Source: Rebecca billardiae RCC1528
Taxonomy: Eukaryota; Protista; Haptophyta
Assembly: GCA_965240325.2 (NCBI GenBank)
Contig: OZ251251.1
Span: 496,001-560,000 of the forward strand
DNA length: 64,000 nt
Direction of reading: 5' to 3'
This document shows positions 2,287 through 6,433 of this stretch, one piece after another. A program made the position numbers and the translations under genes. The notes under the pieces were generated by a model, which was given only the letters and a program-made list of their open reading frames with translations, was not told where the DNA came from and did no database searches. The number at the start of each line of letters is the position of its first letter. Positions within the stretch are counted from its first letter, which is position 1.

Positions 2287-2991
2287 GGCGGCGGCTCGTT
2301 GCGTCATCGTCGGCGAAAATTACGTCCGGCCGCGGCTTCAGGACTCACTTGTGCATCCGGACGCACGCAAACGCTGAACTAGCTGCCCGTCGCTGCCCGC
2401 GCGCGCGCGGCGCGCGGGCCGGGGCGCGGCCCCACCCAACGCGGTGGTGCGAGGCGCGAGCACCCGCCCTAGAGGGCCACGAACCCGATCGGATCGGTGA
2501 AGACGCCGGGCCGGCTCGTCCCGACCCGCCGTCCAGCACTCCGACGCCGGGCCACGAGTGGCCGCGCGTGCTCAGGCAGGCGGAGTCGGACGTGGCCTCG
2601 GTTCGCAGACCATCGTCACTCGGCTCGCGGGCTGCATGCGCGCGCTCGAGGGCCATGGTGCGTGAGCCGCACCGCGCGCTGCGCCACGCTCAGCACGCGC
2701 CCGGCCCACGCGATGCTCTCCGCGGAGCGAGGGACCCGTACCGCCCGTCCGCCATGGCAGGCACGCCGGCCGGCAGCAGTGCTGCCGGCCGCGTGCCGCA
2801 CTGTCTGTCTGCCTGCGCACGCCGTGAATGAATGAATGCTGCCATGGTCGACCGCCGCCGTTTCCTCGAGTGCGCCGGCCGCCTGTACCGCGCAGGGGAC
2901 CCGGTCGCGGTAAGGCGTAAGACTAAGCCGCCGTCGCCGCATGCGGCATGATGGTGTGCAGGCCTGCTTGCTCTCTTGGCGGCCGTCGCCA

Positions 2992-3064
2992 GCGCGGGCG
3001 CGCGCTCGCCCGGGCTGCTGGTTGAACGCGCGCGCGCCCGCCTGCTATGTGTGCCGGCCCCGCG
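2992..3064 (+). repeat. Left copy of ~72-bp direct repeat flanking the 3065-5950 element
   Basis: gcgcgggcgcgcgctcgcccgggctgctggttgaacg...gtgtgccggccccgcg recurs at 5952-6022 with one 2-bp indel and 2 substitutions. Confidence 0.9.
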
Positions 3065-3499
3065 CCTCAAAGATGTGCGGGTGCCTTTTCCGGCCACGTT
3101 CCACGAGATTTTCTTAAAACTGCACTAGCAACCGACGGCCAATCAACGCCCGGCCTGCACCAGGGGCGGTGGAGGGCATGAATAGGTTTTTGAGCAACCG
3201 CCGAGCCTGGTTGAGTCGCTCCGTTCCGGCTGAGCGCCGGTCGAACGGCCCCTCGCGGTTTGTCGAAGTCATGGACGGAGCGGGGAGCTCCCGCCGGCCA
3301 CCGCGCCGGAGCTCGTCACCGCCGCCACGCGGGGAGGACGATTGCGGAATGTCGGCGTCATCTGGCGCGGCATCAATATCGGAATCGGAGACCATGTCGT
3401 CGTGCAGTGGCTGCAGAAGAACGGCAGGCCTTCGGAGCGCGCCGGGCTCGCGCAGGTGCGCCGCGTCGTCAAGAAGTCGTCGCGGGGTCAGTGACCCTC

Positions 3500-4755
3500 A
3501 TGGACCTTGCGGAGTTCATCGCGCGCGGGGGCGCACTGGACTTCTTCGTGAATGCATGGACCGCGTTCAAGCGCCCGAGGTGCGCCGCCCCGCCCGCGAT
3601 CCCTCCCTGCGCGCGCATACCCGCGGCGCGCCAACACCGCGTGTCGTCGTCCGCCCCGTCGTCTGTGATGCCAGGCAGGGCGAGTCCGAGCCGCAGCCGT
3701 TCAAGGCCAAGCGCAACGTGCTGCATGTGGCGAACATGAATCTGACCGAGCCACCCGAGGAGGTCATCGCGCAGCTCCCGACCGCCCGCATGCCATTCGA
3801 GTTCGGTGTCGGCCTGAAGGCCTGGAAGCAGCCGGACGGCGGCATCGTGCTGCCGACGACGACAGGGGCTGCGGAGGACGGGCAGCAGCGCGGCTACCCG
3901 CTGCGGCCGTGCTTGCTCGGGGAGGCGGACGAGCACGTGCTCGATCTCGGTACGATCGGATCCCGCTGCGCGCGCGCCGTGCCCGCTCCCCCCCGCCGCC
4001 CGTGTTGACGCGCGTCCTGCGCGCGTGCCCGCGCGCGCCGCGCAGGGCGCGATGAGATTGGCATCGCCGCGGACGCCGATCTGGTTGCGGCGTGCGTCGA
4101 GTCCGAGCGCCGTGTCGCGGGCTGCCTCGCCGGCAGTAAGGTGTATCGCCACGTCACCATCGTCGCCATCGAGCACGGCGCGAAGCTGTACCGCCCGCCG
4201 GCGGAGGCTGTGCACAACCTCGTCGCGCGGTACCGTGAGTTCCTGTGGCGGGAGCCGATGCACATTCGCGTCCGCCAGCAGCAGCAGGCGGCGATCTTCG
4301 ATCGGCTGCTCACGCGCGTCGTCGCGCACTGCCGAGGCTTGCACGCAGCCGAGCGCGCATCGGTCCAGGTCGATGCCACCGCGTACGATGCTGCCGTCAT
4401 CGACCTCTTCGCCGAGGACCGCCTGGGCCGCTGGCTGCGCGGCCGGTACGAGCTCGAGCTCGCATCTCACGCGAGCTTGCCGCTCGCCCCCGGCTGGCCC
4501 TTCTTCTCGATCGCTCCGCTGAACGGCAACGCGTCGGACAACTACGCCGAGATCTTCTCTCCCGCCACGACGCTCGCCGAGAGCCCGCACCAGCTCGTCC
4601 TGTTCACCGACTTCCAGTCGGTCATCGGCCTGCGCTTCACCTGGCGTAAGTGGAAGGATGTCACAGCGACCGGCGGGACAATCATCGGCGGCTCGCCGCC
4701 GCCGACCGCGGGCTACCATCCGAATAGTGGGCGGGGATGTACGTACGGCTGGTAG
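3500..4755 (+). CDS. Three-exon orphan protein (~354 aa) inside the TIR element; N-terminus may extend upstream
   Basis: Exons 3500-3579, 3675-3949, 4046-4755 join in frame across GT-AG introns of 95 and 96 nt (MDLAEFIARGG...FKRPRQGESEP...VLDLGRDEIG...CTYGW*). No motif recognised. Confidence 0.7.
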
Positions 4756-5853
4756 GCATGACGTAGTCAGTCACGGCTCAGCACTCCAGTCGCACTATCC
4801 CGCATTGGCGCCATATTCGTTCGTGATACTCGTCAGTCTTATTCGTCGGATGAGGCCCGCGCTCGCGGGCCGCGCGGCGGCGCGGGCCGCGCGGGCTGCG
4901 CGGGCCCGACGCGTGCCACCGCCACCGGCCACTGTGGCAGCGCGCGGCGGCGCGGGCCGGATACGGTCGTGCCAGGCTCCGGTTCGGGCGGGCGGCCGGC
5001 TTAGACCCCCCTGCAAGCCCGGCGACGCCACTGCGGGTCACGCTCAGGGACGGCGGCAGAGCCGGCCCACTGACTGGTCTCGCCGCCCGCGGGTGCGCAA
5101 CCGTGACCGTCAGTTCCGCGCGGGCACCAGAACTGCGGAGCACGGCCGCGGCGGCGCGGCCGAGTCGCTGTTACTGGCTGCTCGCGATTGGGATGCAGCA
5201 GCTCTACCAGCGACCAGCCACTTGAAGCATGTACACACTCACCAAGCCTTGCCGCGCGGCAGTCACGTTTGCCCGCCCACGCGTGGCCCGTGGCCGTGCC
5301 CGTGGGGCGACCGGCTCAGGCAGCGCAGCGGGGCGGCTCGCGCTCCCTGACTGTCGTTGCGAGCTAGCACTTCTGTGGTCTCCCTGCTTCCTCTCGAGAC
5401 CTTGCCCGCTCCTTCAGACGTGCTCGCGCAGCACCCGTGTCGCGAAAGCTCTCGGGCTCGCGCTTGGATGGCGCATCGCATTCGTGTCGGCTGCCCGCGT
5501 GCAGTACAGCCCACGCGAGGCGCAGCCACGGCCCCTTGTCGAGAGGCTCGGATACCCCTGGGATGGCCCAACGACCCCGCTGCCGCCGCGGCCACGGCGG
5601 GCGCGCGCCAACGCTCGCCTCCCCGAGTCGCCGCCCCGGCAGCCGGGGCGCGGCGGCCCCGGGCCGCCCGCAACCAGACCGGGCTCAGAACGCGTATTAC
5701 CGGTTTGGCGGCCGTAGGTAGAGGGCCCACCCCTTGCCCTCGCGAGTCCAGGATTTGATGCAAGACCGCCAGACCAAGGGCCGTGGCCAGACGAGAGGAT
5801 AGGGATTTCGTGCAAGACGGCGCCTAGTCGTGAGGAGCCTTGATTGAAGAAAA

Positions 5854-5879
5854 AGTTTAGTCAGTCGACTGACTAAACT
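5854..5879. repeat. Perfect 26-bp palindrome
   Basis: agtttagtcagtcgactgactaaact equals its own reverse complement. Confidence 0.9.
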
Positions 5880-5951
5880 CATCTCCCCTACAAATGTTCA
5901 GGAGATCAAGGCTAGAAGCGTCCAGAAACGGCACCCGCACATCTTTGAGGT

Positions 5952-6022
5952 GCGCGGGCGCGCGCTCGCCCGGGCTGCTGGTTGAACGCGCGCGCGCCCC
6001 TGCTCCGTGTGCCGGCCCCGCG
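5952..6022 (+). repeat. Right copy of ~72-bp direct repeat
   Basis: Matches 2992-3064. Confidence 0.9.
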
Positions 6023-6359
6023 CGCAGCCGTCGCGCCGCCACCGGGCCCGGCGGCCACGTCCGCCGGCGCCGCCGCCGCCCGGCGCCGGCGCCACCGCCG
6101 CCCGGCGCCGGCGCCGCCGCCGGTGGATGGAGGCGCCTGGCGCCACGGCGGCGCCCGGCGCCACGGCGGCGCCCGGCGCCACGGCGGCGCCGAGCCGCGC
6201 CGCATCGCCGAGCCGCGCGCCGCATGCCGTGCCGAAGCGCATGCCGTGCCAAGCCAGGCTGCCAGCGCCGAACCGCCGCGTCCCGCGCGGCAGGCAGGGC
6301 CGCAATGCTCACGAGCGCGCGCGCAGGGCAAAAAAGCACAGGCGCGGAAGGCAAAACAA

Positions 6360-6433
6360 TTGTCCCTGGCCGGCTCGAACGGCCGACCTCGCGATTAACA
6401 GTCGCACGCTCTGACCAACTGAGCTAAGGGACA
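6360..6433 (-). tRNA. tRNA-Asn(GTT)
   Basis: Cloverleaf: acceptor TGTCCCT/AGGGACA, D arm GCTC-AGTTGGTCA-GAGC, anticodon arm TGCGA-CTGTTAA-TCGCG, T arm GGCCG-TTCGAGC-CGGCC. T4 and T6 runs downstream fit Pol III termination. Confidence 0.95.

Follow-up and report, generated by a model that had tools for sequence, protein, structure and literature searches.

Transposition that engages two chromatids is known experimentally in flies and maize, where it is a source of small duplications and deletions. Among bacterial elements, IS1549 and IS1634 are accompanied by long repeats that recur at most of their insertions. Hybrid element insertion by the P element leaves flanking duplications or deletions beside a retained element, according to the passage of PMC3744419 that cites Gray 1996 and Preston 1996, and alternative transposition of the Ac element produces rearrangements comparable to P hybrid element insertion (PMC3744419, PMC4270019). 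Transposons that have terminal inverted repeats (TIRs) and insert without target-site duplication have been described as Spy elements, in the PHIS (PIF/Harbinger-ISL2EU-Spy) superfamily (PMC4482050). Here, we analyze a TIR element, belonging to a family that we call family A, that occupies positions 3063 to 5952 of a 64-kb window (contig 35, bases 496001-560000; positions given without a contig are those of this window) in the genome of a haptophyte-type alga and that is flanked by two copies of a 72-bp direct repeat of host DNA. We had a single haploid assembly to hand, that of a 72-Mb genome in 41 contigs with ∼73% G+C and spliced genes. Our results establish that the 72-bp repeat is a one-off local accident and not a trait of the family. 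Tentatively, we favor the reading that it may be the product of one aberrant transposition at this locus, engaging two chromatids (sisters or homologues).

The left copy of the direct repeat (2992..3064, plus strand) measures 73 nt and the right copy (5952..6022, plus strand) measures 71 nt, with the first G of the right copy being also the last base of the element. The two copies align with 69 matches, 2 substitutions, and one 2-nt insertion/deletion (95% identity), and these three differences are all confined to positions 3040-3050. The local alignment score was 125, compared with a maximum of 33 in 500 shuffles, and the repeat is thus far above chance expectation. A first-pass annotation of this DNA had described perfect 21-bp TIRs abutted by direct repeats of 73 and 71 bp, and we confirmed both the coordinates and the letters: CCTCAAAGATGTGCGGGTGCC is found at 3065-3085 and its exact reverse complement (21 nt) at 5930-5950. 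The same annotation had placed a 1-nt offset on the right side. The extra base, a T at 5951, is indeed present, but it is the T of the element's terminal TG and not an offset.

The repeat unit number is exactly 2.0, the element sits precisely at the junction of the units, and the 90 nt beyond each repeat show no similarity to the 72-bp unit. The presence of exactly two units also rules out that the element lies within a longer tandem array that has decayed. In a whole-genome search, the unit was found at just these two places, which excludes that it is part of the element or a dispersed repeat and marks it as locus-specific host DNA, the same 72 bp being absent from the other copies of the element. 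Furthermore, the 64-kb window contains no other two-copy tandem duplication with a period of at least 50. As the repeat is unique to the locus, comprises two units with the element at their junction, and is the only duplication of its kind in the window, we consider that the duplication is tied to the element. Conversely, it is very unlikely that two 72-bp units were already in place and that the element inserted exactly between them. An older duplication would fit repeats that are 95% identical around an element that matches its sister copy, and the downstream DNA at 6036-6200 is rich in short tandem repeats. Yet no trace of a third unit was seen, the window offers no second example of such a duplication, family A has no target preference that would favor the junction, and striking the junction within 1 to 2 nt would be a ∼1 to 2% event even given an insertion inside the 144 bp.

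To place the window copy within its family, we combined pattern and DNA searches of the genome, which recovered 19 copies of family A on 16 contigs: the window copy, 17 full-length copies (3,029 to 3,037 bp, 99 to 100% identity; the full element is 3,036 bp long), and one older copy on contig 33 (94% identity). The termini read CACC...GGTG, with CA preceding and TG following the 21-mer in the full-length copies, and the inverted repeat is perfect over 23 nt, including the terminal CA/TG, and 94% identical over 31 nt. The terminal dinucleotide is CA at 33 of the 34 ends of the other copies and TA at the remaining end. Family A is therefore a TIR-bounded, multicopy unit with unrelated flanks, as the definition of class II elements demands, and the initial call of a eukaryotic TIR DNA transposon, for which a lack of any other copy would have been damaging, stands with 18 further copies. 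We conclude that family A is a young TIR element of the cut-and-paste type, present as many near-identical copies and not assigned to a known class. None of the 17 other full-length copies has a flanking direct repeat, either long or short, so a long flanking repeat is found at 1 of the 19 copies, and the 10 bases beyond the ends reveal no target preference.

A second TIR family, family B (2,425 bp), has ends beginning CACCACGACG, likewise starting with CACC, and is represented by at least 10 complete, near-identical copies (L037:7194-9619 on contig 3, L042-L054, and C35:935150-937574, the last being on the window's contig but outside the window). No flanking direct repeats were found at the 10 complete copies. 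One copy of family B (L047; contig 1, 192545-195775) interrupts a GC-rich tandem array with a period of ∼236 bp (L047:1-400, 2826-3231), and the uninterrupted array units beside it constitute paralogous empty sites. Comparison with these sites established that the insertion added zero host bases, and it assigned the CA and the TG to the element and not to the host. Together, the absence of flanking repeats and the empty sites at L047 demonstrate that families A and B normally integrate without target-site duplication.

These results recast the idea, put forward in the first-pass annotation, of an element with very long target-site duplications. Since 17 sister copies have no flanking repeat and the family-B empty site shows zero duplication, the 72-bp repeat is not a property of the element and is best described as an accident at one copy. 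Locus-specific long duplications at other copies, which a genome search had been proposed to reveal, do not recur, and the suggested likeness to IS1549/IS1634 is lost with them. Widely staggered cuts as the mechanism of the element are contradicted by the lack of any stagger at 17 copies of family A and 10 copies of family B. The idea had also been held vulnerable to ordinary short target-site duplications at the other copies; in the literal sense these do not exist, as the copies have no duplication at all, but the force of the objection holds because the long ones do not recur. What survives, and as a one-off accident only, is the suggestion of replication-linked integration, which comes near the two-chromatid event that we favor.

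We then compared the window copy (3063..5952, plus strand; 2,890 bp) with its relatives by alignment with 14 other copies and by whole-genome DNA search. Apart from the second base of the left tip (CG for CA) and a 147-bp deletion, it matches the contig-20 copy letter for letter over 2,889 nt, and the two have a private 1-nt insertion in common. Because 2.9 kb of element shows no divergence of its own, ordinary divergence cannot account for the three differences between the flanking repeats; their clustering can be explained by two different chromatids (homologues) or by repair synthesis. The 147-bp deletion (junction at 3503..3504, plus strand) is found only in the window copy, is in-frame, removes 49 codons of exon 1, and has no microhomology at its junction. 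Class II elements acquire internal deletions through interrupted gap repair after transposase cleavage. By analogy, the deletion would fit damage of this type, and we count it for the two-chromatid reading.

The two junctions of the window copy are asymmetric. The right TIR (5930..5952, minus strand) has a canonical TG tip, reading GAGGTG and then flank, whereas the left TIR (3063..3085, plus strand) has the tip CG instead of the CA seen at 33 of 34 other ends. Positions 2990..2992 (plus strand), which border the left repeat on its outer side, read CA and then G, and we regard them as a putative donor-site footprint composed of the element's CA and the G of its TG. From the letters, this CA-G may be an excision footprint, but it could also be native sequence; by chance, CA would be met in the window with a frequency of 0.053 and CAG with one of 0.017.

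The two-chromatid reading would bring these anomalies together. The element would initially have been canonical, between ...GTCGC and CGCGGG..., and the transposition machinery would have cleaved the left end of the element on one chromatid and the right end on the partner chromatid. The donor flanks would then have been rejoined, leaving the CA-G footprint at 2990-2992, and the freed left end, attached to the element, the 72-bp unit (X), and the distal arm, would have joined ∼70 bp downstream on the rejoined chromatid. The product would be flank - footprint (CAG) - X - element - X - flank, and the reciprocal product without X would have passed to the other daughter cell. We infer this order of events, together with a cleavage that would leave a 5' CA on the donor flank, from the arrangement found at the locus. 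Such an event would be expected to yield a canonical right junction and a noncanonical left one, as well as a CA just beyond the left repeat. If the partners had been homologues rather than sisters, the two repeats would also look like alleles.

Several points weigh against this interpretation. The CA-G footprint was spotted post hoc, and CA alone is expected in ∼5% of cases by chance. A junction made by a transposase should carry CA and the window tip is CG, so that a fill-in error or a host end-joining step is needed in addition. If the partners were sister chromatids, then the three differences between the repeats require a separate cause. No second genomic copy of the locus, be it an empty, ancestral, or reciprocal allele, was found in the assembly, and the sole match obtained when looking for an empty allele in metagenomes, one 24-mer, was a chance match to a bacterial gene. 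Finally, the parallel case on contig 29, described below, runs into a 100-N scaffold gap and could stem from misassembly. Homology-directed repair that copied from contig 20 was tried as an alternative source of the locus and rejected, as the junction would then carry CA.

The same anomalies bear on two other ways of placing an incoming copy at this site. In the first, the repeat would be a one-off long target-site duplication: a copy coming in, probably from contig 20, would have attacked with its ends strands lying 72 bp apart, and the gaps would have been filled. The locus-unique repeat abuts both ends to 1 to 2 nt, the private 1-nt insertion in common with the contig-20 copy would make the two copies parent and offspring, and errors of gap-fill synthesis could yield the clustered differences. 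We nevertheless judge this account unlikely, since it demands a stagger that is seen at none of the 17 other copies of family A nor at the 10 copies of family B, does not provide the canonical CA at the left tip, and makes the CA-G bordering the left repeat a coincidence (P of ∼0.02 to 0.05). Moreover, the geometry of a transpososome normally fixes the spacing of the two strand attacks, which counts against an exceptional 72-bp spacing.

In the second, an excised linear copy would have been captured by end joining, that is, ligated by a nonhomologous or polymerase theta pathway into a break with long overhangs that were subsequently filled in; the break is pictured as two nicks 72 nt apart or as a collapsed fork. 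A left end devoid of the terminal CA and a 1-nt ambiguity (G) at the right junction are what end joining, and not strand transfer, typically leaves, and an error-prone fill-in accounts for three clustered differences in otherwise brand-new repeats. However, a junction microhomology of 0 to 1 nt is weak for joining by polymerase theta, each end of the element is otherwise complete but for at most 2 nt, a 72-nt staggered break has to be postulated ad hoc, and the CA-G must be a coincidence here too. Capture by end joining is therefore doubtful in our view.

We also considered that reads or haplotypes might have been misjoined at a 3-kb repeat. With its 19 near-identical copies, the element is itself repetitive, the two flanking repeats differ in an allele-like manner, and the contig-29 copy lies beside a scaffold gap, with a duplicate block of 11.9 kb that raises suspicion. 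Nonetheless, the 64-kb window contains no runs of N, and the private features of the window copy (the 147-bp deletion and the CG tip) show that it is not a collapsed consensus. As a simple misjoin of a locus with a single X cannot give X on both sides, an assembly artifact is scarcely credible as the origin of the window arrangement.

The copy on contig 29 differs from its sisters by having the TA tip, located at its junction with unique DNA, and its other flank duplicates a locus on contig 34. The copy and 8,901 bp of flank are 99.99% identical between contig 29 (L019/L020/L056, 1145170-1157098) and contig 34 (L027/L028/L058, 355065-366994), and the resulting 11.9-kb duplicate block on contig 29 ends at the 100-N scaffold gap. 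It is possible that this copy represents a second case of end-linked rearrangement, and it is also possible that it reflects an assembly or scaffolding problem, so we treat it as a lead only.

We then turned to the coding content of family A. Periodicity of GC at the third codon position indicated that coding is confined to one gene in the left half of the element and that the right-hand 1.3 kb is noncoding. Based on frames, GT..AG borders, and this periodicity, the only gene of the element extends over 3267..4755 on the plus strand. Its parts, each defined by frame and GT..AG borders on the plus strand, are a possible exon 0 (3267-3455), the remainder of exon 1 (3504-3579; partly deleted in the window copy), exon 2 (3675-3949), and exon 3 (4046-4755), which ends with a TAG stop at 4753-4755. 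The exons were searched one by one. No Pfam match was obtained for any exon or for any of 10 relatives, a word-indexed protein search with the element protein returned only the query itself, and a search of the ESM Atlas returned nothing. An exhaustive HMMER search did identify the 10 environmental relatives (P0002-P0011), which are encoded on short contigs and have 30 to 40% identity. The exon-3 domain thus belongs to a small family found in environmental contigs only, with the conserved motif LFTDF..S..GLRF.RRKW.D. In two environmental proteins, P0003 and P0012 (from the same cluster as P0004), one open frame spans parts resembling exon 2 and exon 3, in support of the splice model.

The fold predicted from the single sequence of the element protein was useless (predicted local distance difference test [pLDDT] of 33). 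In an AlphaFold prediction of the exon-3 domain with the relatives as alignment, the pLDDT reached 82.8 and the predicted template modeling score was 0.80. Searches with this model yielded no match in the PDB (best E value of 0.55 with Foldseek; best Z score of 3.4 with VIA-align), and the exon-3 domain is thus predicted with confidence to adopt a fold without a known match. A BAH domain in the element protein was not confirmed, and exon 1 gave a weak ubiquitin-like match (E value of ∼0.2, to a single ubiquitin). Comparison of the gene with that of the 94% identical copy showed 5 synonymous and 15 nonsynonymous codon differences, hence no signal of purifying selection.

The first-pass annotation had also proposed to look for an autonomous copy and to type its transposase, and this search came back empty. 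No recognizable transposase (DDE/RNase H-like) was found in the family-A element by Pfam with all exons or by structure search with exon 3. Transposase_21 (CACTA-type) had no match in the genome, and control genomes were equally silent. The genome contains two DDE_Tnp_4 (PIF/Harbinger-type) genes (C15:1907816-1908247 and C7:714907-715338), both single-copy and with an intact domain, in open frames of 422 and 569 amino acids. No ends of family A or family B are present within 5 kb of either gene, and these genes may be domesticated or belong to other elements. Neither search yielded an autonomous partner, and the family-B copies hold only a decayed gene fragment, each copy containing a 430-bp, stop-ridden piece of the family-A gene (74% DNA identity).

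Isolated pieces of the family-A gene region that lack element ends are also present, at C31:403456-404216 and C33:462055-462298. Over 584 bp, one of these pieces reaches 98% DNA identity, and the others have diverged further; they may be left over from aborted repair or from old copies. All copies of family A contain a perfect 26-bp palindrome ∼70 bp inside the right end (5854..5879 in the window copy), which could be a protein-binding site or form a hairpin. Many copies (flanks L001, L007, L013, L021, L023, and L034-L036) are situated no more than a few hundred bases from long (TA)n or (TGA)n microsatellites, which form AT-rich islands in this 73% G+C genome.

Downstream of the window copy, a tRNA-Asn gene (6360-6433, minus strand) is located 410 bp from the right inverted end, in agreement with the ∼410 bp reported earlier. 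Between the element and this gene, the region 6036-6200 consists of short GC-rich tandem repeats with a period of 16 to 22 nt. We scanned the surroundings of the 17 full-length copies and the older copy (18 in total) and found no tRNA gene within 1 to 1.5 kb of any of them. This rules out that family A targets tRNA genes, and the proximity of the tRNA-Asn gene to the window copy is therefore incidental.

A eukaryotic transposon that routinely made 72-bp target duplications would represent a new integration mechanism; the window case is a single accident. Its interest lies elsewhere: in the window copy, a haptophyte-type alga may have preserved a natural trace of alternative (two-chromatid) transposition, and, if the footprint reading is true, the locus hints at where the family-A enzyme cuts. 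Family A is of interest by itself as a young, duplication-free TIR family whose sole protein has a confident predicted fold without a known relative. A bolder proposal, to which we give little credence, is that families A and B would form an undescribed superfamily mobilized by the family-A protein, which would cut two nucleotides inside the 5' ends with a 0-bp stagger, and that the window copy would be a preserved hybrid-end product with its donor footprint. If true, this would provide the first view of the cleavage chemistry of the superfamily.

How family A relates to described systems can now be stated more precisely. As with bacterial IS1549 and IS1634, a long direct repeat of host DNA abuts the inverted ends at the window locus. 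In contrast with these elements, such a repeat is seen at 1 of 19 copies of family A and 0 of 10 copies of family B, and the host is a eukaryote with spliced genes. An identity with CACTA/EnSpm elements was rejected, as the family-A termini begin with CACC and not CACTA and there is no 3-bp target duplication. Excision of Tc1/mariner elements leaves 2 to 3 nt of each transposon end at the donor site, because the 5' cut is made two nucleotides inside the element. The CA-G beside the left repeat and the CA missing from the left tip would, by analogy, fit a 5' cut at the same distance, but unlike Tc1/mariner, family A has neither a TA target duplication nor a DDE_3/Tc1 transposase.

Like Spy elements, family A is bounded by TIRs and inserts without duplicating host DNA, and Spy is the only known group among those compared that shares duplication-free insertion. 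Spy carries a DDE_Tnp_4 transposase gene and targets sites between AAA and TTT. Neither its target nor its transposase fits family A, the flanks of which show no AAA/TTT context and which has no DDE_Tnp_4. Family A thus behaves as a class II TIR transposon but does not have two of the features by which membership is assigned, a target duplication and a recognizable transposase.

For the event at the window locus, the closest parallels are found in maize and flies. As in sister-chromatid and reversed-ends transposition of maize Ac/Ds, ends from different chromatids or elements would have cooperated, leaving the transposon at the junction of a duplication. The documented Ac cases involve two nearby elements, rearrangements in the kilobase to megabase range, and 8-bp target duplications, whereas the window locus has one element with a 72-bp duplication and lacks a target duplication. 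In P hybrid element insertion (Gray, Tanaka and Sved 1996; Preston, Sved and Engels 1996; both as cited in PMC3744419), one end from each chromatid takes part, reinsertion occurs nearby, and the outcome is an adjacent duplication or the reciprocal deletion. Here, the organism and the element are different, the new junction is without the canonical terminal dinucleotide, and the event is read from one static sequence, with neither recombinants nor a reciprocal product seen. With these differences, the window locus has the same architecture as the products of P hybrid element insertion, X - element - X with one old junction intact: the element is retained, the DNA adjoining one of its ends is duplicated, and one original junction is preserved.

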